Below, in pieces: positions 20,509-52,125 of a stretch of 64,000 nt of DNA; position 1 is the stretch's first letter, and every line of letters starts with the position of its first letter. Origin of the DNA: Macrostomum lignano (Eukaryota); contig NIVC01000064.1 of assembly GCA_002269645.1 (NCBI GenBank), forward strand, positions 248,001 through 312,000, given 5' to 3'. Position numbers and translations under genes: made by a program. The notes under the pieces are model-generated. The model was given only the letters and a program-made list of their open reading frames with translations, made no database searches and was not told the origin of the DNA.

Positions 20509-23500
20509 ATGCGGAATCCACTGCCATCACTCTGGCTATCGATTGCTCTCGCAGCGGTGCTGGGCACATCCGGGGTCCACAGCTACCCCAGCTTCACCTA
20601 TAGCTACGTTGGCTGCTACACCGACAGCGGGTCTAACAGAGACATCACTGGCTTAGGCGGAATCTCCCAGCTGGGCAGTTTTCCAGCAAGTCTCTTTTAC
20701 ACTTTTCATGCTGTTTTGTAGACCAATGCTAAGTAAAATGTGGCCCCCTAATCGACTAACAAAAGCACACGATTTTTAGTGCCGGTGCCCAGAAAGAGAA
20801 ATGAAATGGCGCCACCTCACAAATGAAATGGCGCCACCTCTCAAATCAAACGGCGCCCTCTCAAATGAAATGGCGCCTCTTTTATAATGAAATTGCGCCG
20901 GCGCCCATTTTCAAAAGAAATGGCGCTCCCCACTCAAATAAAATGGCGCCACCTCACAAATGAAATGGCGCTCCCTACTCAAATGAAATGGCGCCCCTCT
21001 CAAATGAAATGGCGCCACCTTACAAATAAAATGGCGCCACCTCACAAATGAAATGGTGCCCCTCTCAAATGAAATGGCGCCACCTTACAAATAAAATGGC
21101 GCCACCTCACAAATGAAATGGCGCCCCCTCTCAAATGAAATGGTGCCCCTCTCAAATCAAACGACGCCCTCTCAAATGAAATGGCGCCTCTTTTCTAATG
21201 AAATTGCGCCGGCGCCCATTTTCAAAAGAAATGGCGCTCCCTACTCAAATGAAATGGCGCCCCTCTCAAATGAAATGGCACCACCTTACAAATAAAATGG
21301 CGCCACCTCAAAAATGAAATGGTGCCCCTCTCAAATGAAATGGCGCCACCTCACAAATGAAATGGCGCCCCCTCTTAAATGAAATGGCGCTCCCTACTCA
21401 AATGAAATAGCGCTCCCTACTCAAATGAAATGGCGCTCCCTACTCAAATGAAATGGCGCTCCCTACTTAAATGAAATGGCGCTCTACTTAAATAAAATGG
21501 CGCTCTACTCAAATGAAATGGCGCTCCCTACTCAAATGAAATGGCGCTCCCTACTCAAATGAAATGGCGCTCACCCTACTCAAATGAAATGGCGCTCCCT
21601 ACTCAAATGAAATGGCGCTCCCCAGTCAAATGAAATGGCGCTCCCTACTCAAATGAAATGGCGCTCCCTACTCAAATGAAATAGCGCTCCCTACTCAAAT
21701 GAAATGGCGCTCCCTACTCAAATGAAATGGCGCTCCCTACTTAAATGAAATGGCGCTCTACTTAAATGAAATGGCGCTCTACTCAAATGAAATGGCGCTC
21801 CCTACTCAAATGAAATGGCGCTCCCTACTCAAATGAAATGGCGCTCACCCTACTCAAATGAAATGGCGCTCCCTACTCAAATGAAATGGCGCTCCCTACT
21901 TAAATGAAATGGCGCTCTACTTAAATGAAATGGCGCTCTACTCAAATGAAATGGCGCTCCCTACTCAAATGAAATGGCGCTCCCTACTCAAATGAAATGG
22001 CGCTCACCCTACTCAAATGAAATGGCGCTCCCTACTCAAATGAAATGGCGCTCCCCAGTCAAATGAAATGGCGCTCCCTACTCAAATGAAATGGCGCTCC
22101 CTACTTAATTGAAATGGCGCTCCCTACTCAAATGAAATGGCGCTCCCTACTAAAATGAAATGGCGCTCCCTACTCAAATGAAACGGCGCTCCCCCCACTA
22201 TTCAAGAAGTCCTTATTTACTTTTGTTTCACTGATGCATTTTCAAACAAAATTGGTCCTTAAATCAATTAACTAACATTGTCCTGAGTAGGTGGACCCTA
22301 ACACTGGAGCGCAGTACATCTTTGACAACTCCGCAATGTCGCTGAGCCTGTGCGCTAGCGCCTGCTCGCTGGGCGGCTTCCCTTACTTCGGCGTGCAAGC
22401 CAGCGCTTTCTGCTTTTGCGGCTGGTCCTACGGATCTCTCGGTCAGGTCAGCGACGCGGATTGCAGCAGTTCCGGTGAAACTTGCAGAGGAAATCCGGCT
22501 GAAGTGTGCGGCGGTCCAAATCTGAATGCAGTCTACGCTATGCACTACGGTACGTGTCTAGAGTTGGGGAGTTGCTGAGATGCCAATTGGCTCAATGGGG
22601 AGTTGCTGAGATGCCAATTGGCTCAACGGGGAGTGGCTGAGATGCCAATTGGCTCAATGGGGAGTTGCTGAGATGCCAATTGGCTCAATGGGGAGTTGCT
22701 GAGATGCCAATTGGCTCAATGAGGAGTTGCTGAGATGCCAATTGGCTCAATGAGGAGTTGCTGAAATGCCAATTGGCTCAATGGGGGGAGTTGCTGAGAT
22801 GCCAATTGGCTCAATGGGGAGTTGCTGAGATGCCAGTTGGCTCAATGGGGGAAGTTGCTGAGATGCCAATTGGCTTAATGGGGAGTTGCTGAGATGCCAA
22901 TTGGCTCAATGGGGAGTTGCTGAGATGCCAATTGGCTCGATGGGGAGTTGCTGAGATGCCAATTGGCTCAATGGGGAGTAGCTAGGATTCCATGGCTCAA
23001 TGGAGAGTAGCTAGGATTCCATGGCTCAATGGAGAGTAGCTAGGATTCCATGGCTCAATGGGGAGTAGCTAGGATTCCATGGCTCAATGGAGAGTAGCTA
23101 GGATTCCATGGCTCAATGGAGAGTAGCTAGGATTCCATGGCTCAATGGAGAGTAGCTAGGATTCCATGGCTCAATGGAGGGTAGCTAGGATTCCATGGCT
23201 CAATGGGGAGTAGCTAGGATTCCATGGCTCAATGGGAAGTAGCTAGGATTCCATGGCTCAATGGGGAGTAGCTACTGGTAGGATTCCATGGCTCAATGGA
23301 GAGTAGCTAGGATTCCATGGCTCAATGGAGAGTAGCTAGGATTCTATGGCTCAATGGGGAGTAGCTAGGATTCCATGGCTCAATGGAGAGTAGCTAGGAT
23401 TCCATGGCTCAATGGAGAGTAGCTAGGATTCCATGGCTCAATGGGGAGTAGCTAGGATTCCATGGCTCAATGGGGAGTAGCTAGGATTCCATGGCTCAAT

Positions 23501-23967
23501 GGGGAGTAGCTAGGATTCCATGGCTCAATGGGGAGTAGCTAGGATTCCATGGCTCAATGGGGAGTAGCTAGGATTCCATGGCTCAATGGGAGTAGCTAGG
23601 ATTCCATGGCTCAATGGGGAGTAGCTAGGATTCCATGGCTCAATGGGGAGTAGCTAGGATTCCATGGCTCAACTGATTGGAGCTTCCAAAGCCCTTTTTG
23701 TCTCCTGTAGGCAGCGGCTGCAAGACATTTCGGCTGGAGGCCAGCCGACCTCAGCTGGTGGTGACCAGCTCCTACTCGAAGACCACCCACTGGACTGAAC
23801 CCGTCACCGAGGCCGCCAACTGCATTCTGAAGTGCCACTCCTCCGCCAGTAGCAACTGTCAGGCTGTGATTTTCCAGCAGCAGGCCCGGCTGTGCCACCT
23901 TCTGAAGTTCGCTCTGGTGCCGCAGGCTCTGAACACCACTGTTGGAGACTTCTACATCAGAGCCTGA
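20509..23967 (+). CDS. Secreted WSC-domain + PAN/apple-like protein, copy A, 3 exons, ~230 aa
   Basis: Exons 20509-20685 (signal peptide, YVGCYTD; GC donor GCAAGT), 22291-22549 (CASACSLGGFPYFGVQ..FCFCG..C..CGG), 23711-23967 (CILKC..CQAVIF..CHLL). Phases 0 and 1 join in frame. Confidence 0.88.
20805..22195. repeat. ~23-bp minisatellite in WSC-A intron 1
   Basis: Unit CAAATGAAATGGCGCTCCCTACT; more diverged in the 5' third. Confidence 0.95.
22562..23672. repeat. Compound 31-bp then 29-bp minisatellite in WSC-A intron 2
   Basis: GGCTCAATGGGGAGTTGCTGAGATGCCAATT to ~22975, then GGCTCAATGGGGAGTAGCTAGGATTCCAT; fills nearly the whole intron. Confidence 0.95.
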
Positions 23968-24347
23968 GAGCGGTCCTCTGCTGAAACATCTACTGAAAAT
24001 ATGCAACAGTGAACTGTCTAATTAATTAATATTTTTTGCTGAGGAAAATTAGTTCACTACATGAAAGCCAACCCCTCTGGGAACAAAGACTGTACATGCC
24101 TGATAGTTAGAAAGTCACCCTGTGCGAGTGTGCAGCGCCTGCGTATGTATCTGTGTACATGTTCAGGAGTCGGTGGAACGGCCTTGATTTGTAATTCTTA
24201 GCCCTCTGCAAACTAACTGATTGCCTTTAGTACCCAATCCCTATTTCCTTTTCGAATTGCTTACTTTAAGTCTACTGATTCATATCGTGTCTTTTCAATT
24301 AGTTTCGTGTTAGCTGCAAATTTTGCAGGATTTCTAAATTGGATAGC

Positions 24348-25230
24348 CATCTGATTGGCTAGAGAGTGGAAGGGGTTAGATTCTCCTTGATCGTCATCTG
24401 ATTGGCTAGAGAGTGGAAGGGGTTAGATTCTCCTTGATCGTCATCTGATTGGCTAGAGAGTGGAAGGGGTTAGATTCTCCTTGATCGTCATCTGATTGGC
24501 TAGAGAGTGGAAGGGGTTAGATTCTCCTTGATCGTCATCTGATTGGCTAGAGAGTGGAAGGGGTTAGATTCTCCTTGATCGTCATCTGATTGGCTAGAGA
24601 GTGGAAGGGGTTAGATTCTCCTTGATCGTCATCTGATTGGCTAGAGAGTGGAAGGGGTTAGATTCTCCTTGATCGTCATCTGATTGGCTAGAGAGTGGAA
24701 GGGGTTAGATTCTCCTTGATCGTCATCTGATTGGCTAGAGAGTGGAAGGGGTTAGATTCTCCTTGATCGTCATCTGATTGGCTAGAGAGTGGAAGGGGTT
24801 AGATTCTCCTTGATCGTCATCTGGTTGGCTAAAGAGTGCAGGAAGGGTTTAGTTTCTTCTTGTCGTCATCTGGTTGGCTAGAGAGTGCAGGAGGAGTTAG
24901 ACTTTCCTTGACCGTCATCTGGTTGGCTAAAGAGTACAGGAAGGGGTTAGACTCTTCTTGACCGTCATCTGATTGGATAGAGAGTACAGGAAGGGGTTAG
25001 ACTTTCCTTGACCGTCATCTGAATGGCTAGAGAGTACAGGAAGGGGTTAGTCTCTCCTTGACCGTCATCTGATTGGCTAGAGAGTACAGGAAGGGGTTAG
25101 TCTCTCCTTGACCGTCATCTGATTGGCTAGAGAGTACAGGAAGGGGTTAGTCTCTCCTTGACCGTCATCTGATTGGCTAGAGAGTACAGGAAGGGGTTAG
25201 TCTCTCTTTGACCGTCATCTGGTTGGTTAA
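24348..25230. repeat. 47/50-bp minisatellite with one CCAAT box per unit
   Basis: Unit CATCTGATTGGCTAGAGAGTGGAAGGGGTTAGATTCTCCTTGATCGT, switching to a 50-bp variant after ~24830. Confidence 0.95.
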
Positions 25231-26329
25231 AGAGAGTGTTAGAAAAGTATATTTTGTGTGTTAGATGTGTCGCTTTTTAAACGCTGAACTTTAACTTTTT
25301 CAATTTAAAAAGCGTCATTCTTTTTTGTGAATATTGCCAATAACTCTATAAAAGTACACTGACAAATTTAATTCCTATAAGCTCGCAGCATCGCAAACTT
25401 ATTCTCATATACTCGTATGCCTATCGATTTCATCAATTGGTTTCTAAATTCTCTTTTAAATATATATACAGTCTATCTTTTAAAGAGCTCTTCAACATAA
25501 AATTCCTTGCCTTTTCAGTCGATGCCTCGCTTCTAAAATTTTTCAATACTTTTTTGCCTTCTATGTTTCCCCTGAATGGGCACGAGAGCCTGCAGATGCT
25601 GGCAAATGTTTCCCTGGCGCTTCTGCTTTTAGACAGAGAAGACGGGAAGACACTGGCAAAGCGTGCGGCTTGCTACTTCTGCAGCGTCTCATCTTCAAGC
25701 TGCAGCCAACCTCACAGCCGTGAGACACTTTAAAAAAGAGCTTAAAAAGCAGATCGTTGCTGCTTGGCTGATTGCCTCGCGAGACAACATAATCAGTTCT
25801 CTGCGCAGTAGAACGACTGGGAAAAGTTTCGTAAGTTTGCCGATATCCTTCCTCCATCCTCCATCATTATACTAAAAATGGTCTGTCGGTAGGTATTAGG
25901 TATCTACTATCTATCTAGGTAGGTATGCGATCGATTAGAGAAAAACAGCTCAACTGATTTTCATTAGACTTGCACTGTTCGATCAGAAATTTTCCCGTGA
26001 CAGTACACGTGTCTTGGCTAAGAAATTGCCTAATGCTAAAGGGATTAAATATTCGAAATAAAAATCTTTTTTGCAAAGGTCAAGCAAACTTTTCGACTTG
26101 AAATGTATTGTAAGAATGCTAAAGAATATACCAATATTGATGATGGGCTGCAGAGGCCTCTGCAGAGGCCTCGCGCGTAAAAGAAGCCTCTCGTATAAGC
26201 ATTGCTGTGACTTCTTGGGGAGAGTTTTGAAGGTCTACGGTGAATAACTGTGATGTAAAGGCTTACGGGGAGATTTCTTAGATGTCAAGGCAAAAGTCAG
26301 AGAGGCCTTTTTTATTAGAGGCAGGGGGT

Positions 26330-27398: not shown

Positions 27399-28739
27399 AT
27401 GCTTGACAGGATTATTCTGCAAGGATTCCCTGATCTGATGCTGACTTCCCTACATGTGTCTGCTGCCACCTTGCTGCTGGTAGCCAGTGCTGCTCAGTGC
27501 TACTACAGGAGCTTCAGCTATACATACGTTGGCTGCTTCAAGGACAACACGGGAGGCGTCAGGGATATCGCTGGGCTGACTGGGATCACCCAGATGGACA
27601 CTTTCGATGTAAGTATGAATATCTAGCCTCTAGTGGTTGTAGCCACTAGGAGTTGTAGCCGAGTGGTCAGAGCGTGGGACTCACGACTTGAATGTCGGGA
27701 GTTCGATTCCCGATTTCATTGGAACATTTTGTGTCCTTGAGCAAGACACTTAGCAAGCATTGCTTCAGTTCACCCAGCTGTAAAATGGGTGCCAGCATTA
27801 GCTGGGCTAATTGAGGCTGTGAGTGGCGACCCCGCAGTCCTTGGACTGAACAGCCGTACGCAGCCTTCAGATGCGCCGCGCAATAGCTGCGGCTGAGCTG
27901 TCGGTTGCGAATCCGGCCATTATGGCAGGTGTAATCAATTGTTATTATTATAAATGTCTACAAAAACACATTGCATTGATTTTTGTCGTTCAGCTTCAGG
28001 CTTTAAACCAGATTATTATTTTTTTATAGCCGGGTGTCTACCGCTTTTAGGTGCACCCCGAGCCTGGCGAATCATTTGTGTTCATTACGATGGCGCCCAA
28101 TTTGTGCGCCAGAATCTGCTCTCTGGGCGGCTTCGCCTATTTCGGTTTGCAAGCCGGAAGCTTCTGCTTCTGCGGCTGGTCCTACGGATCGCAGGATTCG
28201 GCCCCAGAGTCTGATTGCTCAGAGGCATGCACTGGAAATGCCTCGACCATCTGCGGTGGTCCCAACCGCAACTCCGTCTACGCAATGCATTTCGGTAATA
28301 AAAGTTCATTAAAACGTCATTAAACGGGAATTGCAAGTACTACTGATCAAGAGAATTTGAGTAATCAGCGGGAATTGAGGTTGGAGATCCTAGCTGCTCT
28401 CATGAACTGCCGCCTTGAACTTTGATTAGCCAACGAACCACTGACAGAACTGAGCTGCTGCTTCTGCTCATTCCAGGCAACAGCTGCAAGAACTTCCACC
28501 TGGAGACCAGCCGACCCCAGCTGAAAGTGGAAGTCGCCACCTTCACCCAAGCCGCCTACTCTGCCGTGGCCGCCACGGAAGCCACCGACTGCATTCTGAA
28601 GTGCCACTCCGCCGGTAGAACCTGCCAGGCTGTGATCTTCAACCAGCAGGCCCGGCTGTGCTACCGGCTGAGGTTCGCTCTGGTGCCGGAGGCTCTGAAT
28701 ACCACTGCCGCTGTGGGAGATTTCTACGTGATCGAGTGA
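27399..28739 (+). CDS. Secreted WSC-domain + PAN/apple-like protein, copy B, 3 exons, ~238 aa
   Basis: Exons 27399-27608 (alternative ATG 27438), 28051-28294, 28477-28739; GT-AG, same intron positions and phases as copy A; YVGCFKD, CARICSLGGFAYFGLQ, CILKC..CQAVIF..C. Confidence 0.9.
27649..27952 (+). mobile_element. tRNA-derived SINE with CORE-like central domain, in WSC-B intron 1
   Basis: A box TAGCCGAGTGG, B box GAGTTCGATTCCC, then GTGTCCTTGAGCAAGACACTTA...CAGTTCACCCAGCTGTAAAATGGGT resembling the MIR/CORE consensus as recalled; (TTA)n tail. Confidence 0.8.
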
Positions 28740-30808: not shown

Positions 30809-31205
<397 letters not shown>

Positions 31206-31745: not shown

Positions 31746-31747
31746 TA

Positions 31748-32364
<617 letters not shown>

Positions 32365-32368
<4 letters not shown>

Positions 32369-33476
32369 CTAAATTTTCAACCCACAAACTCGGCTCTGCT
32401 ACCTGCTGAAGTTTTCTCTTGTGCAGCACCGTTGGGGAAGAGTCAATGACGATTGTCCCCAACAACATCCCCAACAACATCCCCAACAACTTTGACTTAC
32501 TGATTTTGCTGCAATGTGGTCCGTAGACACCCATTCCGCTAGCCCTGAAGGCCCGCAGACAGGCAGAGGCGTGGGACCCGTCAATGGACGGGTTCGGCCC
32601 GAGGTAGTGTAGCCGGTCTCTGGTAAAGAAAGGGCAGTGACAAACAAAGTGCTGAGCATCTTCATTGTCGTACTCGCAAAAAGGGCAAAGTTCGCTCTCG
32701 AGGTCGCCTCGGAGGAAGCAGTGCCTGGCGAGATAGCCGTGACCGTTAAAGGTCATGACAAGGGCTCAAATATCCTTCCGATTTTGGTTCAGAAGGACGT
32801 TTCTGAGCCTGTGAGAGGGGCACGGATCCGCGGCACGAGATTGCCGGCAGTTCTGGGTTCAGCCCAGTCATCGATCTGACGATTGATGACCCTAGAAAGG
32901 ATAGTGACCAGGGGTTCAGGACCAAGGAAAGAGCCAGAGCCGCTCCCCCTGGCGATGGTGTCTGCCAACTCGTTTCCCAAAAACATCCCTAGCAGCACCC
33001 CCAACAGGATTCCCAACAGCATCCCCAACAGCATCCCCAACAGCATCCACAACAGCTTCCACAGCAGCATCCCCAACAGCATCCCCAACAGCATCCCCAA
33101 CAGCATTCCAAAAGCATCCCCAACAGCATCCCCAACAGCATCCCAACAGCATCCCAAACAGCATCCCCAACAGCATTCCAACAGCATCCCCAACAGCATT
33201 CCAACAGCATCCCCAACAGCATTCCAACAGCATCCCCAACAGCATTCCAACAGCATCCCCAACAGCATTCCAACAGCATCCCCAACAGCATCCCCAACAG
33301 CATCCCCAACAGAATCCCAACAGCATCCCCAACAGCATTCCAACAGCATCCCCGATATGTTTACTATAGTTTGTAGCGGCTCGCCTTCGGCCTGGCGAGC
33401 GAAAAGAAAGTTCGCTTGCCAAGCCTCAAGTTGCGGCCTGGCTTCTCAACTTGAGCGTCTACTTGGGCCATAGACG
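32365..33476 (-). mobile_element. Non-LTR retrotransposon 3' fragment (RNase H end + CCHC knuckle), degenerate
   Basis: GNELADTIARGSGSGSFLGPEP (RNase H C-terminus) followed by GHGYLARH..CPFCEYDNEDAQHFVCHCP; stops and frameshifts present. Confidence 0.8.
32985..33355. repeat. ~12-bp minisatellite inside the LINE RNase H motif
   Basis: Unit CCCCAACAGCAT and variants. Confidence 0.9.
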
Positions 33477-33478
33477 TA

Positions 33479-34771
33479 CGAGAGGAAGTCAAAAAGTAAT
33501 GATAATTTTGTTCTCACGAAGTGTCAAACTTCAAATGGGAATCTACTCTTCTACATGGTACCCCTTCAGGGTCAGGCACTTCTTCATTCAGTGTTGCGGC
33601 TGTTGCCATCTCTCCAGGCCGTTCGCGTAGAACTCAGGAGGCTGTGCAGCAAGCCACTGTACAGTAGCCACTGGACTCCTTTGATTGCTTCCTTCAGCTT
33701 GGGAAACAAAAAAGTCCGGAGGAGCCAAACCAGGGCTATATGGAGGATGCTAGAGGATTTCCAGGCGGAAATCTTGCAGGGCTTCACGGCAGAGCCGAGA
33801 AGTGTGGGCTGGTGCATCGTCGTGGTGAAAGAGAATCCCACAGTGCAGCTTGTCGGGTCGCTTTTTGGCCAGTTCGGTGCGGAGCTAGCTTTCGCAGAAG
33901 CGACTCATATCAGGTGGCACTGATGGTCTTCTGGCTTTCCAAGAAGTCGACCGTCACCACTCCCTAAACATCCCAGAAGATGGTCGCCAAGACCTTCGCT
34001 GCAGACCGTTCTGCACAGAACTTCTTGAGGCCCGCAGAACCTCGTGGCAGCCCCTCCTTGGATTGGACTTTGGATTCGGGATTGTACTGAAATATCCATG
34101 TTTCATCCCCAGTCACTGAGCGCTGGTAAAAGTTTTCTGAATCAGCCTCCAAGCGGTTCAGCAGGTTGATGGCACACTCAGTGCGCTGAACCCGGTGTTC
34201 AGGCCGCAACAGCCGCGGGACTCAGCGGGCACTCAGCTTGCTCAGACCAAGACAGTCCGTCACAATGGAGTGAGCACTGCCATGAGAGATGGCCACTTGG
34301 TCAGCAATATTGTCTATGGTCACGCACCGATCCTGCTCAAGTACCTGCTGCACAGCTGCCACATTTTTCTCTGTGCGCGATGTTTTGGGCCTTCCAGACT
34401 GCTGGGCGTCTTCCACGGACTCTCGGCCTTTCTTGAAAGCCTGAATCCAGCGGTAAATGATTGGATCTGGTGGAGCAGTGGTCCCCGTAGACCTTCTTCA
34501 AAGCGTCAATGATTTCGGCTGGCTTCCAACCAAGTTTTACAAGAAAATTCACGTTAGTGCGAGCTTCGATTTTTTAATTTTCCATTGCTTAAAGGGTATA
34601 CTGTGATTAGAGCGTCACCATGCAGACATCAATCACTTTAGAAGAACAAAAACTCTGTAAAATAAAGAGCCAAAGATTTTTTTTTCAAATGAAACCATGC
34701 AGTTGCAGTTCACTACCTCTTATATTTTAGGCGTTACAACAAAATTATCATTACTTTTTGACTTCCCCTCG
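33479..34771 (-). mobile_element. Full-length defective mariner (1293 bp)
   Basis: ~30-bp TIRs CGAG(A/G)GGAAGTCAAAAAGTAATGATAATTTT, TA TSDs (33477-78, 34772-73); transposase remnants NFLVKLGW, GRP, IVTGDETW, KVLATIFWD, HPPYSPGLAP..FLFPKLK; stop at codon 4 and frameshifts. Confidence 0.93.
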
Positions 34772-36553: not shown

Positions 36554-36876
36554 CATTCATGACACGTTTTTTAGCAATTTTACGCTGCAATTTAATCCCC
36601 CCAGCTCTACTCTGTGCGCAGAGGCTTTCACGTACTAGAAAAAGTGTCCAAAAATGCTTGCTGTGAGTCTTATCGCAGTTCTTGGCGCAGCCTTCGCGCT
36701 GGGCGACACATCCTACTCTTATTCTTACCTGGGCTGCTTTATTGACGATGACGACCGGGACCTCCTCGGCCTGGTTGGCATCACCACGATGGGAGAGTAC
36801 AGCGTAAGTTTATTTATTGTCATTACCTGGATTAATCTGAGGCACCAGATAATCAGGAGCTGTCATATCCGCCGCC

Positions 36877-37590
36877 CTCCCAGATCCTCAGTTGCTGGTT
36901 TCCCACCGCCGCTGCTCTTCCCAGATCCTCAGTTGCTGGGTTCCCACCGCCGCTGCTCTTCCCAGATCCTCAGTTGCTGGGTTCCCACCGCCGCTGCTCT
37001 TCCCAGATCCTCAGTTGCTGGGTTCCCACCGCCGCTGCTCTTCCCAGCTCCTCAGTTGCTGGGCTCCCACCGCCGCTGCTCTTCCCAGCTCCTCAGTTGC
37101 TGGGTTCCCACCGCCGCTGCTCTTCCCAGATCCTCAGTTGCTGGGTTCCCACCGCCACTGCTCTTCCCAGCTCCTCAGTTGCTGGGTTCCCACCGCCGCT
37201 GCTCTTCCCAGATCCTCAGTTGCTGGGTTCCCACCGCCGCTGCTCTTCCCAGATCCTCAGTTGCTGGGTTCCCACCGCCGCTGCTCTTCCCAGATCCTCA
37301 GTTGCTGGGTTCCCACCGCCGCTGCTCTTCCCAGATCCTCAGTTGCTGGTTCCCACCGCCGCTGCTCTTCCCAGATCCTCAGTTGCTGGGTTCCCACCGC
37401 CGCTGCTCTTCCCAGCTCCTCAGTTGCTGGGTTCCCAACGCCGCTGCTCTTCCCAGCTCCTCAGTTGCTGGGTTCCCACCGCCGCTGCTCTTCCCAGATC
37501 CTCAGTTGCTGGGTTCCCACCGCCGCTGCTCTTCCCAGATCCTCAGTTGCTGGGTTCCCACCGCCGCCTTCCCAGATCCTCAGTTGCTGG
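36877..37590. repeat. 41-bp minisatellite in WSC-C intron 1
   Basis: Unit CCCAGATCCTCAGTTGCTGGGTTCCCACCGCCGCTGCTCTT, ~17 copies. Confidence 0.95.
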
Positions 37591-37794
37591 GCCACCACCC
37601 TCTCATAGTTTGTCTTCCATTCTCCCAGAACAACCACTGCAGTAGCAAATACTAGCAAGAGGAGCGATAAACAGCCACTGCCCCGCACCACACAAGAGCG
37701 CTGATGAGCATCCCTAGCTTATAATTTGATGGTCGTAGAACGTATAAAAACCAAATTACCAATAAGAAACAAGAAAATATTAGCATTTATCAAT

Positions 37795-40239: not shown

Positions 40240-41269
40240 TGTACTTTTCATTCACCTGCGCGTAACTTTCATATCAGAGATTTTGGTATACGTACGTTTC
40301 AGCCCCAGCCACCATTATAATGTTCAGCCGCACCCACCCCATTTATTTAAAATTATTGCAATATATAGTTATCAATCTCTCCAGAGAGAGTGCGCATTCT
40401 GGTTTTTGTTCGTTTGGCTAGTAGCCGAAAAATAGTCGCTTACTGCGAAGACTCAATTTATTGCATGAACCATCAAAACAGGGAGCTCCGGAAAGGCAAG
40501 TGTGGCGGCAGGGGAGACGGAGCCAAGGCAGCAGGGGGTGCAGCAGAGCGGGAGTCTCCAGGCCTGGTCGAAGACCTGGCCGAGTCTCAACAGCTCTGTG
40601 TAGGGGGTGCACGGCGACAGGAGGCACTTTCGAAAAAGTTCACCTGCCCTATCCCGCGACCAGAGCGTGGTTACATCACTAATTGGATTTCTGCCCCCAA
40701 TGGAATAATCAGCCGCTAGGAGATATGAAATCGTTTTTTAGATTTACAACCCTCTTCTAATTATACAGAAAGCTAGTAAGTAGTATGTCGTGCACATAGC
40801 ATTTAAAAATATGTTTCTAAATTTACATTTCTTCTTTAACTAAATTGCATTGCTACTTACGACCATTTTCTTCACTAAATTGCAGCCGAACAACCTATGG
40901 GCTATAAGCAGCATCGCAATGACTCCAGACTACTGCGCCAAAGTGTGCTCTCTCGGCGGCTTCCCATACTTCGGAGTGCAGTATTATAGTCATTGCTTCT
41001 GCAGCCGGTCCTAGGGATCCCATGGACAGGCTGTGGACGAACAATGTAACACACCGTGCAAAGGCAATGCTTCGATTAACTGCGGTAGAGCGTGGCGCAA
41101 CTCGGTCTTCGCTATGCGCTACGGCTCCAGTGAGATCTAGTTGTTTTCTAAGAAATTACCTCAGTATAATTTGAATTGGAATTCATTCATTACCGACAGT
41201 TGATTACGGAATTTGAATCGATTGAAAATAAAAATTATCGATTAATCGTTGAGACATTCTACAACCTAG

Positions 41270-41507
41270 CATTCACGTCCTGCAATCCAACATCCACGCC
41301 CTGCAATCCAACATCCACGCCCTGCAATCCAACATCCACATCCTGCAATCAAACATCCACATCCTGTAATCCAACATCCACATCCTGTAATCCAACATCC
41401 ACATCCTGCAATCAAACATCCACATCCTGCATCCAAACATCCACATCCTGTAATCCAACATCCACATCCTGTAATCCAACATCCACATCCTGTAATCCAA
41501 CATCCAC
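41270..41507. repeat. 21-bp minisatellite, left part (split by EnSpm element)
   Basis: Unit CTG(C/T)AATCCAACATCCACATC; resumes at 50911. Confidence 0.93.
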
Positions 41508-41996
41508 CCCAGTGGGACTTTTCCGTCCGCCCCGATGTCCGCCCGCGCCTCCGCCCTTTTTTGGGCGACGGCCGCCCCATGGAGCTACGTGACCTCCGCC
41601 CCGGCGTCCGGGGCGGCGCCGCTGGGCGGAGCCTGATGAAATTTGCTCATAAGCCTACTATTAGTAGTAGAATTAGCACAAATTTTTTTTTTGCTGCATT
41701 CACTCAGCATTTTTTTCACGATTTTTCTGCTTTTTGGATTTTTTGATTTTGGGATATTAGCGATCACTGGCTTCGTAATTAAGGCTATTAGAATGATTCA
41801 AAGACTTGTTCGCTTCGTTTTGTTCCTACTGGTGCAGGCAACTCCGTAATGTATATTTAAGTCATAGGTAGTTCGTGTATTTTAATTATTTGCAAGTATT
41901 TTAAGGCATTAAAACATTTTATAAATAAGCGCAATAATTCTTTAAAAAAGAAATTACAAATGAATATTAGCAAAATCAGGAGTGAAGCGAGTCGGC

Positions 41997-42224
41997 AGGG
42001 GCGGATTGAGGGGGGGGGCATTAGGGCGGCCGCCCCCTATCAAAATAGCTTGATAAAAAATATTTTTTTTACCTAAGTTTAAAAACCTAAGTTTTTTGTG
42101 CATAGCTTCATTTTTTACTTTTAACACACTTTTTGCGCCCCCCTAGCTTAAAAATGGCGCCCCTCATACTCTTGATGGCGCCCCCACACTGGGACCCCCG
42201 AAATGAAATTCCAGATCCGACACT
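41997..42224. mobile_element. Possible Harbinger-like MITE nested in the EnSpm element
   Basis: AGGGGCGGAT start and AGATCCGACACT end (imperfect TIR); no TSD resolved. Confidence 0.35.
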
Positions 42225-42491
42225 TCGAGTCAGTTGTTAACTTTCCTCCACTTCAGCCAGCAACAGTAGCGGCCCGTGCAACGATCAGAAGTTTTTAATC
42301 AAATAGGGGAACAAATGAACAAATGAACGATGTGAGGTCCCCCACCCTATTTTACCGACTTGAAACCCCGGACCTATGCGTATCTATGCATAACTAAGCA
42401 GCAACTCTTCTAAGCTCAGTATCTTACAAAAGCACCTTAATTAGCCTATAGGCTTTCACATTTCTGATACTATTTTAACTATATTACGCAT

Positions 42492-44846
42492 TTAATCGTC
42501 ACTGTAGTCGGAAGGACACCGAAACTCATCGTCACTCGACCCCATCAAATCATCCATTTCTCGAACAGCTCTGTTTACATTCGCACTGCGGCGCTTTGCT
42601 GCCCTCTGCTGCTGAGTAGGAGCTGGCCGCTTCTGGGCCCGCTGCGGCGTAGCAGATGTGGTGGCCTGCGAAAGCCCGCTGGCTTGTGGAGTCGAGGCTG
42701 CGCTTCTTGCGCTGATTGAATTTGATGGCGTCATGGCACCGATTGTGTTGCGGCGATGCGACCGCCCCGAGATTCGGTCAGCTCCGTGCCTCAGGTACTG
42801 CCGCACTTGGCTAGCGACCAGATCCTGAGACGGCCTGCCGTCCTCCGCTCTGGTGCCGTAAATTGCTGAGACGGCATCTGCAATTCCAACAAGGGATGCA
42901 AAATAGGTCGATAACTATACAAGATTGTGGTATAAAATGACTATATCCGTGTAAAATAAGCATTATAATTATAATTGTTTTTATGGGTTACAGATTGCAA
43001 GAAGGGTTAGCTGCATTTAGCTTAATAACAGAATATCGTACCTTGGATGTAGCCCAAAAACTTGGATTGAAACGCGAGCTCCCGATCGGATAGCTCCGTG
43101 GCTGCACCAGACTGGCACACCCTGTTCCGCATGCCCTGTCCATTGAAATTGACAAGTGCTTGCAGTCGGGGCGTCAGGATGACATTGACCATGTCGGTGA
43201 CTGCAGTTGCCCAATCTCCGCGCCGGCATAGACGGAGATGATTAATCTGAGGGAAGTGACAGTAAGTTGGGTTCCAGCTTAATTTCGATTAATATAGAAA
43301 CGAAACTACTTTTACTACTTACTCCTCAGAAGCAGTAGCAAGTAGGGGAATTTTTTAATTAAAATAGGTTAACACTGAAACTTACCAAAGTCAAAACTCG
43401 CTCAGAAGGCAAATCAGCGAGGAAGCGAGCATACTCCTCCAGTGAACTCAGAGGTTCAAACAGCAAGCTGGCTGATTGCCCTGCCCGCTGATCCAGACGG
43501 GCCTGAATTCCAGCCAGTATGTTGATTATCTGCTGCTGGCTTTCCTCCAGTTTCATTGTCCGCTGGACCAGCTCTCGCAGCTGAGATACATGGAGGAATA
43601 CGAGGCCGTCAGCGGAATTTAAGGGCATTGGCGCAATAGACTGAAGCTGTTCTTGCAGCCTCTTGATTGGGCCCGGCCCGAACTGCAAGCGGACTGGCCG
43701 ATCGTCTGTGCCAGCAGCAGGTGTGCCAGCATCAGCAGCAGTGCTCAGTAGAGTTTTTTGAATCGTCGACGCCTCTGCAGCTGCCTTTGCCGCTTCCGCT
43801 TTTGCCACTGCCGCCTTCGCTGCTGCCGCCTTCGCCGCCGCCGCCTGTGCTGCTTTTGCCGCTGCCGCTTCCGCCGCTGCCGCTTCCGCCGCTGCCGCTT
43901 CCGCCGCTATCGCTTCGGCCGCTGCCGCTTCCGCCGCTGCCCTTCGGCCGCTGCCGCTTCCGCCGCTGCCGCTTCCGCCGCTGCCGCTTCCGCCGCTGCC
44001 GCTTCCGCCGCTGCCGCTTCCGCCGCTGCCGCTTCGGGCGCTGCCGCTTCTGCCGCTAAAGCCTCCGCAGCTGCGGCTGTGGAGGCCGCACTTTTAGAGG
44101 CTTCGATCTCTTTCGCTGCCGCAACCGCTGCTGGGGTCTCTGCGTTTCTAGCAGCAGCAAATGCCGGTGGAAGTGGCGGCAATGCAGAGCCTTTCGAAAT
44201 CGTCGAATTCGTCGTGGCAACAAATTCAGCATCAGACTCCGGATCGCTTTGAAAGAAATCATCCGTGTTTGAGGCTGATCCAGTTGCCTCATTCTAAATA
44301 GGAGGATGTGGAAGGCAAACTACTCACTGAACCACTCATCCACTGACTCACCCACATACTGACCCACTAGTTGACTTGGAATAACAGCTTACCCTTATTT
44401 GATAACGGCTGCGGGCCCTTCTCCAATCTTCGCGGGTGAAGACGCGTGGCTGCACTTTCTCTAGTACATCGGCTAGCCGTTTCTTCTTCCTAATTAATTC
44501 TCTTGCGTAGCTGAAGCTGCTGGCCTCCAGACAGTCTTCCATAATAACCTAAAATGATTTGTAGGTTATTTCTTGAATTTTTATGCATCAATTTCATTAG
44601 TTCATTTTTTTTAAAATCACCGAAAATCAGAAAATCAATAAAATATTGTTAAATTCTTACCTGAACAATGTAAGCTTCGTAATACTTTTCGTTGTACAGC
44701 ACTTCACATTTCCATTTTAATGTACAATGGCTCCTATCGAGCCACTCCTGCTCTGTCAGATTTTTTAGATGTGAAGGCAGAATCACATCCTCTTCCATCA
44801 TCTCAACTACTTGTCTGTCAATTGCAAAAACAACTAAAAATTTCAT
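42492..44846 (-). CDS. EnSpm accessory ORF2 (DUF4806-like), 5 exons, one frameshift
   Basis: Exons 44846-44661, 44548-44393, 44293-43386, 43246-43042, 42877-42492, all GT-AG. 1-bp deletion near 43941 in the (EAAAA)n repeat; C-terminal LVNFNGQG and VRQYLRHGADR motifs. Domain name is from recalled motifs, not a search. Confidence 0.75.
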
Positions 44847-45176
44847 TTTTAAACTTAAAAAATGATTTTTTGGATTGACAAAGCACGCAGATCGCACGAC
44901 AATTGCACGGGGGAAGGTAGTAGAGCAGTTGGAAGTTAAGAAGACAAGTCATAGTTTCAAATATCGGGGTGGCAGTGGCACCATTCAGCAAATTAGCCAA
45001 TGGGATCCGATTGCGGTTGGCCCGCCCTTTCGCTGGATTGGCTAAGCGCTCAGTGCGGGCGATGGCAGAGTGTTGGTGTTGTTCATCTTACAATTTTGAT
45101 TAGAAATTCTTGATCATTCAAATTTGATTATTTGTTTAAAATTTTATTGAACGAAACGGAAACGTAATTATACGTC
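44847..45176. promoter_or_regulatory. Candidate bidirectional promoter of the EnSpm element
   Basis: 330 bp between divergent ATGs; CCAAT 44997-45001, GC box CCCGCCC 45021-45027, ATTGG 45037-45041. Confidence 0.55.
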
Positions 45177-47141
45177 ATGGCATCAAGGAGCAAACGAAGA
45201 AGAGCGGATGATTTCCTAATGACTAGGTTTCTCCGGGACGATGTCGGCTATGGCAAAGCAATGCCTGAAGCTAGCCCTGTAGAAGTTGATGTCACGGAGG
45301 AGCCGACAGAAACTGCTGAAGTTGAGGAAGAAGAAGCTGGCTTTGATGAGCTTCGGTCGTTGAGCAGCACTGACGATGAAGAGGAAGAGAAACCCCAGGA
45401 TATTCGCTCAACAGAGAAGAAACTGCTGGACTTGCTGGTCAGTTTCTTCACCATCTTTGGCTATTCCAGACCAGCGGCTATTTTCCTACTGGCCGGACTT
45501 CGTGCGATTGATTTGCCAGCACCTAACTATAAAACAGTCGAGCGAATTCTGAAAGAAGATCAACCCACTGGAAAGACAACTCCAATGGGCAATGGACACT
45601 TCCGGTATGTGTCGATTCTTGATAACCTGCAGTTGCTGCTCAGCCAAGGTCTGCTGCGACTGATGCCCGAGAATGAGCACCGTGATGATCAAAGTTCCAC
45701 TCCTAAAGTGTTTAAGTTCGAAGGAATCGTCAATTGCGATGGTTTACCACTCTACCATTCGAGTGGATTCGGACTGTGGCCTATTTTAATGAAAATTCCT
45801 GGCGCATTCGCAAAGCCTTTTCCGGTGGGAGTTTGGGCCGGCGTTGGAAAACCTCCACTTTTGCCCTACCTTCAAGAATTTTGCCAAGAGGCCACAAAAT
45901 TTCTTTCTGGTCCTGTCACAATTAGTAAAGACGTCTCCATTACTCTATCAACAATTTATTTCGTTTGCGACGCCCCCGCCCGAGCATTTTTAATGGCAAC
46001 CTTGAATCACAACTCCTATCATGGCTGCAGCTATTGCCGAGCGGTAGGGCCTCGTGTTGCAAACCGTGTGACTTATGCACTGACGGCTGGAGAAAGCCGC
46101 TGCGGAAAGATCTATCGCGCAGGGATGGAGAGGAACCAGGAAACAAAAAGCAGGATTCGTTCTCCGCTACTGGATTTGCCGAGCATAGATTTTGTCACGT
46201 CTTTTCCTCTTGATTATCAGCATGCTGTTTGTCTTGGTGTTGTTCGCAAGCTAATGAACTTATACTTTGGCAAAGGACCAGCCGGTGAATGCAAGCTTAA
46301 TCCGACACAGTTGCGCCGAATGTCGGATAAGATCACTTTGGTTGCTTCGTGGACACCGTCAGAGTTTCAGAGACGGCCTCGGCGAATTGATATAAACTTA
46401 CAGTACATGAAAGCAACAGAATTTCGCCAATTTTTACTTTATTTGGGACCGATTCTGTTTCGAGGCTTCGTGCAGGAAAAATATATTAATCATTTCTTGC
46501 TTCTGCACTTTGCTCTATATGTCTACTCTGATAGGCGGCTGATCGACTTGTATGACCACGCTAAAAAATGTATTGAAGAATTCGTATTAAAAACAGCGGA
46601 ACTTTTTGGACAGCAGTCCGTTAGTTATAACATTCATGCTTTGCTTCATTTAGATCAGTTCGTGCGGCAACACGCAGATATTAATTACTTCTCAACGTTT
46701 GCATTTGAAAACTATCTGGGTGCAGTGAAGCGAAGCATTAAAGTCACAAGGCACCTTGCAGCCCATTGCGTCCAACAAGTTTTTAAGGTGAGAAAGCAAA
46801 CGCTGCTTCAAAACCACAGCATTCCGGCACTAAGATACCGGCCGACAGCAAGTGACAACTGCTGTTTTGTCGATGAAACCTGCAATACGTGCGTCTACAT
46901 CGACAGCCTTTCAGCAAGTGGACTAGTTTCTGGCAGGATTCTTCTTCCCGAGAGTGACGTTTACTCGTACCCATACGAATCCCTCACGCTTGGAATTGGG
47001 ATTTACCGCCTTACATCGATTGTCACTAGTGGTGTGCCGCAACGCAAATGCTGGATTTGGCCTTCAAAAAATCTGGATACCGAAGCAACTGACGCAGAAA
47101 GTCGTTTCCACGTTGTGCCTCTAACGGGCGACAGGGATTAG
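45177..47141 (+). CDS. EnSpm/CMC-type DDE transposase, 654 aa, uninterrupted ORF
   Basis: Motifs VNCDGLP, FVCDAPARAFL..HNSYHGCSYC, PLDYQHAVCLGV, KATEFRQFLLY, YNIHALLHL, FAFENYLG. Confidence 0.9.
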   Translation: MASRSKRRRADDFLMTRFLRDDVGYGKAMPEASPVEVDVTEEPTETAEVEEEEAGFDELRSLSSTDDEEEEKPQDIRSTEKKLLDLLVSFFTIFGYSRPAAIFLLAGLRAIDLPAPNYKTVERILKEDQPTGKTTPMGNGHFRYVSILDNLQLLLSQGLLRLMPENEHRDDQSSTPKVFKFEGIVNCDGLPLYHSSGFGLWPILMKIPGAFAKPFPVGVWAGVGKPPLLPYLQEFCQEATKFLSGPVTISKDVSITLSTIYFVCDAPARAFLMATLNHNSYHGCSYCRAVGPRVANRVTYALTAGESRCGKIYRAGMERNQETKSRIRSPLLDLPSIDFVTSFPLDYQHAVCLGVVRKLMNLYFGKGPAGECKLNPTQLRRMSDKITLVASWTPSEFQRRPRRIDINLQYMKATEFRQFLLYLGPILFRGFVQEKYINHFLLLHFALYVYSDRRLIDLYDHAKKCIEEFVLKTAELFGQQSVSYNIHALLHLDQFVRQHADINYFSTFAFENYLGAVKRSIKVTRHLAAHCVQQVFKVRKQTLLQNHSIPALRYRPTASDNCCFVDETCNTCVYIDSLSASGLVSGRILLPESDVYSYPYESLTLGIGIYRLTSIVTSGVPQRKCWIWPSKNLDTEATDAESRFHVVPLTGDRD

Positions 47142-48624
47142 ATTAGATATGAACTGATTCGTAAGTCAATTTTAACCCAACGTTTTTTTTTCAAGGTTTC
47201 TAAACAAGTGTATTGCCTAACTTATTGAAACTCGTATCATTTCCCACAGCTGTTTTGGAATCATCGATCAGCTGCTTTGATTTCTCGACTCCGCCTCGCA
47301 GGGCTCGCATGCATCTACCGAAAAAAACTACTAGCTTATTCGACTGTGAACTGGCAATATCAATACACAAAGACAGACTGAAACATCGAGAACGCTAGAC
47401 TGTTTTTTTCTCTGTTCTGCTTTGCTCTCTTTGTTTTGATTTGTTGAACCAAGATTTATAGCTATATAGCTAATAGAAATCGTGGGACCCATTTTATTCA
47501 TGGTCTGTGAACCCTGCTGGCCTGGACATGCCTGGATCAAACAGAGGCTCGAAATAAGCTTTTTTCTTATGGGGGTGGGGTATAAAGAGACAGAGGCAGC
47601 TGTTGTGGCCATAAAAAATGTCGGCTCGACAGGCTTTGAGTTGCTCCTCTACACGATATATCTCTCTCGCAATTCAGTTCGAAATAAAATTGATACATAC
47701 TTCCCCACCAACACACTGCCCGCTTCTTTGCTATCTATCAAACAGGCCTTTTCTGTTCGAACTCAGTCTCCCATAAAGTAAACAACTATATAACTTAGAA
47801 GCAGGTCTGTGGGCTAGAACTGAGCTAAAATCTATCTGCTTCCATGAATGGCTTCGAAAAGGAACACTTTTGGCGCAGCCAGAAATTTGAATCCACTTGG
47901 AGAGTGGAGGGAGTGGGCCTGTACAATATCGAAAATATACGATTCCCCATTCCCTTGCATTTTCTGTATCCCCTGTCACCCTTTTGCTGCGTTAACACCA
48001 GTACACCAGTGAATAGAGAGGCCAGCTAAATTTCCAAGACACTACAGATCCGAACCGTCAAGAGAGCTTTTTTCTGAAAATAAAGTTCGTTCATTTCTTG
48101 ACACTGAGTTAGGTGTGTCAATAATTTCAGCATTAACGACAGTTAGATTTATCAAATTTGAGTGTTGAGAACTATGTGTTTGAATAATTAAACTAACTTT
48201 TTATCAATATGTTTCATTAACTGGTTACTAACTCTTTTAAGGCTTATTAAGCCGTTAATACCCATGTGAATGTTACAGTAACTATATTTTTTACGTTTTA
48301 ATTACAAAGTTTAGCCTTTCAACAACAACGCTTAATCTGTTTTGCATACTTGTCCTGTCTTACATTTACTACAATGAACAACAGTATCTGCTTGTAACTA
48401 TCTATACTTCGAGATTTGTGTGTCGTCTGAAACGAAAGAGTTGATATTTTTAGCGTGAGTTACAAACGTACAAATATTAAAAACTCAATAAAAATTTACA
48501 ACCGCAACAAATTCACGGGGCGCTTTCATTAGGCAAAAATTTCACTTTGCCGAAAAGCACTCTCTTTCACTAGGCCGAACCTTATGTACCTCGTAAGAGC
48601 GTGCTCGGCAATGTGAAGTTCCTC

Positions 48625-49060
48625 TATCCTCTCTACCCTCTCTCCTTTCTACCCTCTCTTCTCTACCCTCTCTTCTCTACCCTCTCTCTTCTCTACCCTC
48701 TCTCCTCTCTACCCTCTCTTCTCTACCCTCTCTTCTCTACCCTCTCTCTTCTCTACCCTCTCTTTTCTCTACCCTCTCTCTTCTCTACCCTCTCTCTTCT
48801 CTACCATCTCTCCTCTCTACCCTCTCTTCTCTACCCTCTCTCTTCTCTACCCTCTCTCTTCTCTACCCTCTCTCTTCTCTACCCTCTCTCTTCTCTACCC
48901 TCTCTCCTCTCTACCCTCTCCTCTCTACCCTCTCTCTTCTCTACCCTCTCTCTTCTCTACCCTCTCTCCTCTCTACCCTCTCTTCTCTACCCTCTCTCTT
49001 TTCTACCCTCTCTCCTCTCTACCCTTCTCCTCTCTACCCTCTCTCCTCTCTCCCTATTTC
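48625..49060. repeat. CT-rich 16-20-bp minisatellite inside the EnSpm element
   Basis: Core CTCTACCCTCTC; a GA-rich tract follows at ~49560-49850. Confidence 0.85.
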
Positions 49061-50910
49061 TTCTTTCTCTTCCTTCTCTCCTCTCCTCCCTCTCTCCCTT
49101 CTCTCGTCTCTTCCCTCTTTTCTCCTCTTGTCTTCTTTCTTATCTCATCTCTCTCTGTCTCTCATGTCTCATGAGCTTGCACTGGATTTTTCATCTGGCC
49201 CTTGAGGAAAAAAGTTTGCCAGCCTCTGGGTTAAAGCTTTGAGTCAGCTTTGCTTCTCGCAGCGCAGCACAGCGAGCCAATAGGTCGGATTACCTAGCTC
49301 TTACTTCCCTGGCCAATTTAGACTGCCATAACTTTGCCCCAAATAAATATATTTATTTCAAACTTGAGTCGATTGCGCCTTGATATGTTTTCTGTCTAAA
49401 CATGGAGTCTCAGCTTCATAACTCAATCAACAACAACAACAACAACAAAATACTCAATAACTCAATCAGGACAGGACAGAAACTATGAGCATGTGAAGTT
49501 TGCCTGATTTTTATCTATTCTTTCGCCTGTGGAGTAGTAGAGCAGTTAGAGAAAACAGGGAAACATAGAAAGCTATAGAAAACAGAGGGAGAGAGAAGAG
49601 ATGAAAAAGCAGTAGACAAGAAGACAGATAGAGCAGCAGAGAGGACAGATGAAAGGGATGCAGGGCAGATGCAAGAGAGGGAGGATGAAAAAAGGGTACA
49701 GCGGAAGAGAAGACCGGGATAACAGAGTGAGAGTATAGACAGATCGAAGGGGGGAGAACAGTGTGAACAAAGGAGAGAGGAGAGTAGACAGATAGAAGGG
49801 ACTGAGGAATAGGTTGAGAGAGGACAGATGGAGAGAAAAAGAGACAGTAGAATCTTGCTTAAATAAACCGACGGAATCGAAATCGTAGACCTTGTTTGGT
49901 TTTTCCTAACTTCCATTGCACTAGCTATTTAAATATTTTTTGTTAGATTTTAAATCAAAGAAGCAAAAGAGATACAGGGTTCCAAATTCTGTGGGTTTAA
50001 ATTCCAGATGTTAAAGCAGCGTGTTTTCACCAAAACAAATATATAAATAATCAATAGTTAGTTTTGCCTGCAGAGAAATATCCAAGCTGCGCAACGGCAT
50101 CCAGGAATAAAAAATCTGCGATTTTAGTGGACACTACTCAAAGCTGTAACAGCTGCTGCAGCATTTTTCAGATCATTGATTATGGATTTCTGGCCAACAG
50201 GAACAGCATGAAGTCAAGCATTGCAGACACTACTCGTAGTTTCACCCAGTGAGGAGCACTTAATTCTACTTCTAAGGGGCATTTTAAGCCGGCATGTTCG
50301 ATCAGCAGGTTTAGCAGCAATTAAAAATAGATGGCAAAGACAAGCTCACTTTCTAAAAGCGCAAATATTTAATATTTATCGTCTATTTGATGCTTTTAAT
50401 CTTCTTTCGACTGCAAACAAAAATTTGTTCTCGGGGGCCTGCAACTCTACGCTACTAAAAGTAGTCTGATGCGCATTTAAATTTTTATGAAACTCTACAC
50501 ATCTTTCCGGAAAAATAATTTCACAATGTTGGCACTAGGCAACAGCAAATATTTCCCTAACGTTTATTGTAAAGAGTAGTCACCTATTATTGTGATAAAA
50601 AACGGTTCTCCCGCTAAGCTGTAAGGGCAATGCTATTAAATAAAGCTGCCTGGAACATGAAACATGCCAAATTTAGGTTGCCGCCTCATAGGCCGCCGGG
50701 CGATCACCGGGCGGCTTCGATTAGGATTTAAAAAATCGTACTTATTAAGGCGAAATAAAGTATCACGATTACAAAATCACAATTTCTCATTGAAAAATCA
50801 GATCATCCTTCATTGTAAAGTGAAAATAAAAATATTTACTGACTGCCCTCACAGGCGGTCGCGAGGGCGCACACCGCCCACTGTACGCCCCACTTTGTTG
50901 TCCCACTGGG

Positions 50911-51060
50911 ACGTCCTGCAATCCAACATCCATATCCTGCAATCCAACATCCACATCCTGCAATCCAACATCCACATCCTGTAATCCAACATCCACGCCC
51001 TGAAATCCAAAATCTACGTCCTGCAATGCAACATCCACGCCCTGCAATCCAACATCCACC
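50911..51060. repeat. 21-bp minisatellite, right part
   Basis: Same unit as 41270-41507. Confidence 0.93.
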
Positions 51061-52125
51061 TCCCCAAATCAATGTGGCATGTTCATTGCTCGTCCATCTT
51101 CCGCAGACAACGGCTGCCGCTCGTCGTACCGCCCGAACCCGAGCCAACCCCAGCTGGTGGTGAGCAGCTCCTACTCGAAGGCCACCTACTAAACGGAAGC
51201 CATTCCGGATATCGCCGGCTGCATTCAAAGATGCAGCACCGCCGCTAGCAGCTGCCTGGCGGTGCTTTTCAACCGACAGGCCCGGCTCTGCCACCTGCTG
51301 AAGTTCTCTCTGGTGCCGCAGGCTCTGAGCACCGTCGATGGAGAGTTCTATGCTCGTGGATAAAATCCTTTTGTATTCTCGCTGTAAATTAGGATTAATT
51401 TTCGTTCACTTTGATCGGTTCGACAGCTGTCTGCGATGTTCTGGCTCTCTGGAGACTCCGACAGTAAAGGTGTTTTTTAACGATTGAACAAATCAGAAGT
51501 AATCAATTTGCTTTTCCTGAGAGCTTTAAAAATTTTACGTACGGACGTTAGGACTCTCATAAAATACTCTTGACTAACATGTTAAAAATATTCTTGCAAT
51601 ATCCTTGATCCTTTGAAATTTAAGTAAATGTAAGAGAGTCTAGTTATATAGCTAGCCAATCTGCATCCTGGTCCCCCTCTGCGACCCATCCAATTTCTGC
51701 TGCGCTTGTTCTTTAGAGGTGATTGATAAAACAAAAAATTATAAGACAAGTTTTTTTACTGTATATCGATCAAGAATAAAGCGATGGACCTTTTTTATGA
51801 CCCTCTCGACAAAGAAAATGCTACTGCTTATCATTTCATGATCTATCGATATGATTGATATGGCATGCTTCTACTGACACTGGTTCAAAGCAAGCAAATA
51901 CAACCAGCAATTACAGTGTTTGAAGTGTCTGCAGCCTAGCGCGTGACCCAACCAAATTACAAGTACAATGCAGCCTACAACGAAACCTGTCGATTTGTTA
52001 TCCATAACATTTCTAGATGCTAAAGCAAGATAATGTTTGTCGCAAAATAAACTTTCGGTGTAGATATAGAACCGAAACACATCTTGAGGCCTCGACCGGT
52101 TAGCTTTCAATATCTTGTAGCCAAA

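Follow-up and report, generated by a model that had tools for sequence, protein, structure and literature searches.

The 64,000-nucleotide stretch of contig NIVC01000064.1 analysed here (the window; all coordinates are positions within it) carries on its + strand three tandem paralogous genes, termed copies A, B and C, that follow the same three-exon plan and encode small proteins in which a WSC domain is followed by a C-terminal module attributed to the PAN core. Gene calls were made from a six-frame list of open reading frames (ORFs) together with the raw sequence. Copies A and B are intact, and their exons are as follows.

20509-20685, + strand: copy A exon 1, with the start codon, the predicted signal peptide and the start of the WSC domain, ending at a GC donor (CCA/GCAAGT).
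22291-22549, + strand: copy A exon 2, with the remainder of the WSC domain (Pfam 45.1 bits), ending in phase 1 (TACG/GTACGT).
23711-23967, + strand: copy A exon 3, with the putative PAN-core module (C-x3-C-x7-C-x11-C), an extra N-terminal cysteine and the stop codon.
27399-27608, + strand: copy B exon 1, ending at the donor GAT/GTAAGT.
28051-28294, + strand: copy B exon 2, with the WSC domain (Pfam 49.5 bits).
28477-28739, + strand: copy B exon 3, with the putative PAN-core module and the stop codon.

Copy A encodes 230 amino acids and copy B 238, or 225 when counted from a second ATG at 27438, which is the likely start because the Macrostomum lignano orthologue of B begins at the corresponding ATG. 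Intron 1 (phase 0) and intron 2 (phase 1) interrupt homologous codons in A, B and C, and the GC donor of A intron 1 falls exactly at the GTAAGT site of B and C. GC is the commonest non-canonical donor type; alternatively, its occurrence in A might be a first step of decay. When M. lignano family proteins were compared with the window exons by tblastn, E values reached down to 1e-36 to 1e-48, so the similarity is far beyond chance. A first-pass annotation, made from the letters alone, had described three paralogs of identical exon structure, one of them dead, and the coordinates, the intron phases and the stops in copy C bear this out. Splicing of exon 3 to the WSC exons, on which that description depended, is supported indirectly by M. 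lignano gene models, which join the two across an intron of the same position and phase as in the window genes, and by a 21-bp minisatellite that flanks an insert in copy C (see below).

The mature A and B proteins comprise about 205 residues (about 22 kDa, isoelectric point 5.5-6.0). Hydropathy was calculated by the Kyte-Doolittle method over 19 residues; N-terminal segments scored 1.6-1.9 and none exceeded 1.32 past residue 30, a profile consistent with a signal peptide and the lack of a transmembrane segment in the products of A, B and C, and suggesting that the A and B proteins are secreted. Together with WSC scores of 45-49 bits, these values agree with the earlier description of a signal peptide, one WSC domain and no transmembrane segment.

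Pfam searches of the A and B proteins returned WSC and PAN_1 only. The WSC matches (PF01822) lie well above the curated cut-off of 27.8 bits, and the hallmarks of the domain are present, namely eight cysteines (C36, C80, C84, C100, C102, C117, C124 and C132 in A), among them the C-x3-C pair of the helix and the C-x-C pair of the strand, and a CGG motif (CGGP in A). When about 18 sequences with 35-59% identity to A are aligned, the eight WSC and four PAN cysteines are invariant or nearly so, as are several Gly, Phe and Leu positions. Identity between the window paralogues is 43-55%, with a mean column identity of 47%, and the most variable stretch is the loop at the intron-1 junction within the WSC module; strong divergence between fixed cysteines had been noted at first pass and was confirmed. 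In characterised proteins the ligand of a WSC domain is a glycan or, in the case of Kremen, a protein. The domain is itself of the PAN/apple fold, as seen in the structure of yeast Wsc1 (PMC9024836), so the A or B protein would in effect be a tandem of two PAN-fold modules.

The exon-3 module is, as judged from profile matches and a predicted model, a PAN-core domain. Its pattern, C-x3-C-x(4-7)-C-x11-C, is invariant across the family and is that of the PAN core of two disulfides. A profile was built from nine family modules and used for an exhaustive search of 1.84 billion representative proteins, which returned 93 proteins at E<=1e-3, the non-family ones being multi-repeat proteins; of these non-family matches, the ten that were checked all proved to be PAN_1 proteins, with E values of 1e-12 to 1e-144 and as many as 20 repeats. 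Sequence matches of the module in the PDB were all weak and all PAN/apple (SML-2, the HGF N domain and MIC4). An AlphaFold model of the A module, computed from a 70-sequence alignment in which family modules and PAN repeats were combined, gave a predicted local distance difference test score (pLDDT) of 85.7 and a predicted template-modelling score (pTM) of 0.77, with strands, one helix and further strands. Searched against the PDB with Foldseek, it matched PAN/apple structures almost exclusively among the top 40 (probability 0.8-1.0 for most; best template-modelling scores 0.45-0.59), including HGF NK1/N, plasminogen PAp, SML-2, leech antiplatelet protein, MIC4 and the PAN domain of a Colletotrichum copper oxidase (6RYW). 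Precomputed PF00024 matches exist for three M. lignano family members, and UniProt automatic rules call one of the M. lignano members an Apple domain-containing protein. The A module alone scored 23.3 bits against PAN_1 (PF00024; cut-off 21.4); because this score is borderline, PAN membership rests on the profile and fold evidence and not on a clear Pfam score.

No cysteine follows the fourth core cysteine, so that the apple-type outer disulfide linking the N to the C terminus is absent and the module is not of the apple subtype (factor XI/prekallikrein type). The 4-Cys PAN-like module of the first-pass annotation held good as regards the PAN core but not as an account of the whole exon, as exon 3 of A (C149; 23716-23718), B (28482-28484) and C carries a fifth cysteine ahead of the core. 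This cysteine is kept in some M. lignano members and is missing from one clade, which also lacks intron 1. A offers no obvious partner for it. In B and its M. lignano orthologue the signal peptide carries an additional cysteine at its end, which could be the partner; alternatively, the fifth cysteine might form intermolecular bonds. PAN cores of HGF, plasminogen, SML-2 and MIC4 (the last two being apicomplexan galactose lectins) have protein or carbohydrate as their ligands.

Relatives were sought in 5.8 billion clustered proteins and in the exhaustive profile search of 1.84 billion described above. Full-length relatives were found in Macrostomum lignano only (names were confirmed for the clusters checked), matches outside Macrostomum spanned the WSC half alone, and no protein in either search was identical to A or B. 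An architecture of one WSC domain and then one PAN core within a small soluble protein thus appears, in these protein searches, to be restricted to Macrostomum. Family members such as A0A1I8G2U8, Mlig027391.g1 and Mlig011376.g1 bear automatic names ("WSC" or "Apple domain-containing"). A literature search found no paper characterising a two-domain WSC and PAN family, in line with the earlier view that the architecture is not an already characterised one, and family gene identifiers were found neither in the main texts of the papers nor in the supplements of PMC5816591.

In a neighbour-joining tree copy C pairs with the M. lignano protein P0001 (75% identity) and copy B with P0002 (78% identity once the missing exon 1 is added from locus L001); no orthologue of A was detected among the M. 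lignano relatives. This pairing indicates that the A/B/C duplications would be older than the split of B and C from their paired orthologues. Tandem arrays are also found in M. lignano, with at least seven copies in 36 kb at locus L003, four at L004 and two at L002. Within 10 kb of four M. lignano family loci, no synteny with the window neighbours was seen. Two of the public M. lignano gene models are faulty: P0002 lacks its first exon (L001 9449-9613), and P0004 is a chimera that joins the WSC exon of one array copy to the PAN exon of another 15 kb away (L003 10001-10390 plus 25551-25781).

The third copy, its interrupted intron and a possible further fragment occupy the following positions.

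36654-36803, + strand: copy C exon 1, apparently intact, with the predicted signal peptide and the start of the WSC domain.
40886-41123 (or 41129), + strand: copy C exon 2, with a decayed WSC domain and an alternative GT donor after 41129.
41270-41507, no strand assigned: 5' half of a 21-bp minisatellite in copy C intron 2, identified by match of the repeat unit.
50914-51063, no strand assigned: 3' half of the minisatellite in copy C intron 2, with the unit of 41270-41507 in rotated form.
51107-51363, + strand: copy C exon 3, with the putative PAN-core module and an in-frame TAA at 51190-51192.
32388-32426, + strand: candidate PAN-exon relic of a fourth copy (TRLCYLLKFSLVQ), a weak tblastn match (E 0.008).

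Copy C is a pseudogene, on account of two in-frame stops (the TAA in exon 3 and a TAG at 41012-41014 that replaces the Tyr of the conserved GWSYG motif), damaged motifs (among them the conserved CGG, now CGR) and the loss of the canonical intron-2 donor. Its M. lignano orthologue, in contrast, is an open reading frame. As one 21-bp unit lies on both flanks, 41508-50913 (about 9.4 kb) was inserted into what had been a single minisatellite intron, and the split minisatellite ties the distant exon 3 to copy C. The insert carries an intact ORF of 654 amino acids (45177-47141, + strand) without a Pfam match; a search around this ORF for terminal inverted repeats found none, and the insert is probably derived from a mobile element. 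The short match at 32388-32426 is possibly a relic of another family copy. Two ORFs without a Pfam hit adjoin it: that at 32361-32756 (- strand) looks by eye like the C-terminal zinc-binding region of a retrotransposon reverse transcriptase, and that at 33964-34552 (- strand) like a decayed mariner-type transposase.

Minisatellites with 23-, 29- and 41-bp units make up much of the family introns (20799-22193, 22565-23672, 36878-37591 and elsewhere), the two introns of A being almost wholly minisatellite. Intron 1 of the M. lignano orthologue of B is a (GATA)n array (L001 9620-10000).

Rates of nonsynonymous (dN) and synonymous (dS) substitution were estimated by the Nei-Gojobori method as crude pairwise values. 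Between B and its M. lignano orthologue dS was 0.24 and dN 0.12 (dN/dS 0.49; 0.60 for the WSC part and 0.43 for the PAN exon), pairwise dN/dS among A, B and C was 0.39-0.50 at a dS of about 1, which is near saturation, and six M. lignano paralogues gave 0.28-0.69. These ratios are high for coding genes yet below one, and the family evolves fast. Positive selection is not claimed, as no overall ratio exceeded one and domain-level values of about 1.1 arose only with a probably damaged array copy. Tandem copies in the window and in the M. lignano arrays, together with the dead copy C, support evolution by tandem duplication, divergence and loss; the birth-and-death process that had been proposed from the window alone is thus supported, with the candidate relic as a further item.

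From these features, A and B are, on a slight balance of probability, secreted two-module, lectin-like ligand binders. Each protein would be a soluble two-site binder in which the WSC domain and the PAN module each present a ligand-binding surface on a rigid disulfide scaffold, acting as a coat or cross-linker on extracellular glycoconjugates or as a tether between a glycan and a second ligand. The scaffold of cysteine, glycine and aromatic residues stays fixed while the surface loops change fast. Lectin activity of the family is plausible from its domain content.

For the setting in which such binders would act, expression records of M. lignano were consulted. Orthogroup OG0000005 (Brand et al. 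2020, PMC7336406) holds three of the five family genes with public identifiers and comprises 92 sequences contributed by M. lignano, M. spirale and M. hystrix, M. pusillum being unrepresented. Positionally, the orthogroup falls into the classes Non-Specific, Other and Testes, resulting in the final label Testis, and the neoblast data set labels it germline_FACS; a Tail class is absent, and protein divergence averages 0.92 (PMC7336406). Family expression in testis or germline is thus weakly indicated, and we lean, with uncertainty, towards a setting related to reproduction (testis or sperm-associated, or another ejaculate component) and not to immunity.

Several points weigh against a bivalent, reproduction-related binder. 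The remaining PAN_1 scores fell short of the cut-off (A whole protein 20.3 bits, B module 20.0, B whole protein 16.7), and, with PAN repeats present in the alignment behind the AlphaFold model, its fold match and the sequence evidence are not independent of each other. A full-length AlphaFold model from a 17-sequence alignment was discarded as too poor (pLDDT 44.7). Ligand binding and bivalency of the A and B proteins are suggested by domain families only, and a dN/dS below one does not show positive selection. On the side of expression, the Testis label of OG0000005 needs just some testis-specific members, its classes including Non-Specific and Other; the orthogroup has no in situ record (PMC7336406); the sole member with visible counts, Mlig000498.g4 (630 nucleotides), had 9, 12, 2 and 8 reads and was classed Non-Specific; and no prostate transcript of the 18 tested by RNA interference is assigned to any of the five named family genes.

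More specifically, the genes might encode Macrostomum-restricted bivalent WSC-PAN lectins engaged in post-mating sexual selection, for example as a sperm coat made in the testis, or as proteins passed on with the ejaculate, that would bind glycans of the partner's reproductive tract, with sexual conflict driving gene birth, rapid divergence and death. This more detailed version is put forward tentatively and is doubtful as it stands; if true, it would add to a hermaphrodite model reproductive proteins of a new molecular class.

Somewhat less probable is that the proteins are immune or mucus lectins, secreted for pattern recognition or for organising mucus and binding microbial glycans (such as beta-glucan through the WSC domain), diversified by pathogens and expressed at a low basal level with induction upon challenge. 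Both modules are of a glycan-binding type and the proteins appear secreted; fungal WSC lectins do bind beta-glucan (cited in PMC9024836), tandem birth and death with a hypervariable WSC loop would fit, and the very low counts of one member in unchallenged adults are compatible with an inducible gene. The only tissue-specific labels of OG0000005, however, are Testis and germline, and no evidence was found for the role in microbial recognition or mucus/adhesion that the first-pass annotation had favoured.

An origin in the prostate glands, with the proteins passed to the partner in the ejaculate as seminal fluid proteins alongside the prostate-limited WSC transcripts, is less likely again. WSC-type best matches are recorded for about 25 of the 76 putative seminal-fluid transcripts that are prostate-limited in M. 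lignano (Weber et al. 2018, PMC5816591, Table S1), which makes WSC-domain proteins the largest annotated class among them; Mlig-pro46 and others resemble WSCD2, and a suggestive effect on sperm competition followed knock-down of Mlig-pro46 (PMC6953679). Fast evolution is typical of seminal proteins, and a fibrinogen-related (Fibrinogen_C) domain gene adjoins the cluster (53608-53949 and 54709-55182, + strand), fibrinogen-related (angiopoietin- or ficolin-like) proteins being another class on the prostate-limited list (PMC5816591). The lack of overlap between the five named genes and the 18 tested transcripts, the absence of the Mlig-pro46 forward primer from four family loci and the lack of a Tail-class member in OG0000005 argue against this origin, and on the first two of these grounds no link of the family to the named seminal-fluid transcripts was established, the gene comparison covering 18 of the 76. 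The Mlig-pro proteins are likewise small to medium secreted WSC proteins of the same genus that evolve fast, but several have two or more WSC domains, no PAN module has been reported in them, they are expressed in the prostate (tail) as opposed to the testis label of OG0000005, and the gene sets differ where they could be compared.

The least probable of these accounts is that the family, expanded and lineage-specific, is largely decaying under relaxed constraint and of little present function, with many of its copies dying or unexpressed and A and B simply not yet broken. In its favour, copy C is dead, 32388-32426 may be a relic, A has a GC donor, dN/dS is 0.3-0.7, one M. lignano member is almost unexpressed and the L003 array copy at about 20.3 kb has a damaged start of its PAN module. 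Against it, the roughly 18 aligned sequences all keep the 12 scaffold cysteines along with several Gly, Phe and Leu residues, dN/dS is clearly below one although A, B and C diverged long ago (dS about 1), and orthologues of B and C have been retained.

Among known systems, the M. lignano WSC/Apple domain-containing proteins (A0A1I8G2U8, Mlig027391.g1 and Mlig011376.g1; OG0000005) share with the window genes the architecture, length, cysteine pattern, boundary intron and tandem layout, the differences being the state of copy C and the missing counterpart of A. By working principle, the closest characterised analogues of the secreted two-module binders proposed here would be the tandem PAN-fold lectins SML-2 and MIC4 and the fungal WSC lectins. 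Sarcocystis SML-2 and Toxoplasma MIC4 resemble the family as secreted proteins that consist solely of tandem PAN-fold modules; they bind galactose and are among the matches of the C-terminal module in sequence and fold, but are protist proteins that have no WSC-type module and, unlike the WSC-PAN family, have extra disulfides in their apple domains. Serendipita WSC3 and the Colletotrichum graminicola oxidase 6RYW use WSC or PAN as secreted glycan-targeting modules, the PAN domain of 6RYW being the fold match given above; they bear repeated WSC or catalytic domains instead of a single WSC and a single PAN, and have no close sequence relationship to the family. Kremen1/2, WSCD1/2 and polycystin-1 contain the same type of WSC domain, which in Kremen can bind a protein (Dkk1), but they are membrane proteins with kringle/CUB, sulfotransferase, PKD or many other domains, and in none does a PAN directly follow the WSC. 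As Pfam returned only WSC and PAN_1 for A and B and no transmembrane segment is predicted, these are not Kremen, WSCD or polycystin proteins.

WSC-domain proteins dominate the candidate seminal-fluid proteins of Macrostomum, a model for sexual selection and conflict in hermaphrodites, and a mechanism for them has so far been lacking. The WSC-PAN subfamily offers a compact and tractable target in this respect, with about 205 mature residues, two putative PAN-fold modules, orthologues, arrays and a pseudogene. It also provides a clean example of gene birth and death; outside the field, it adds one to the many lineage-specific families of secreted, cysteine-rich proteins assembled from well-known domains.

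Elsewhere in the window, two housekeeping genes are represented by an exon of a fizzy-related (FZR1/CDH1) WD40 protein (6382-6948, + strand) and an exon of a CAF1/CNOT7 ribonuclease (62321-62689, + strand). A search with the FZR1-like exon, made to obtain a baseline of divergence, unexpectedly returned no Macrostomum protein, the best identity being 67%. Very long low-complexity tandem arrays lie in the region 10361-17029; base composition differs strongly between their strands (GC skew as low as -0.64), and they yield spurious ORFs of 500-1000 amino acids in both orientations.

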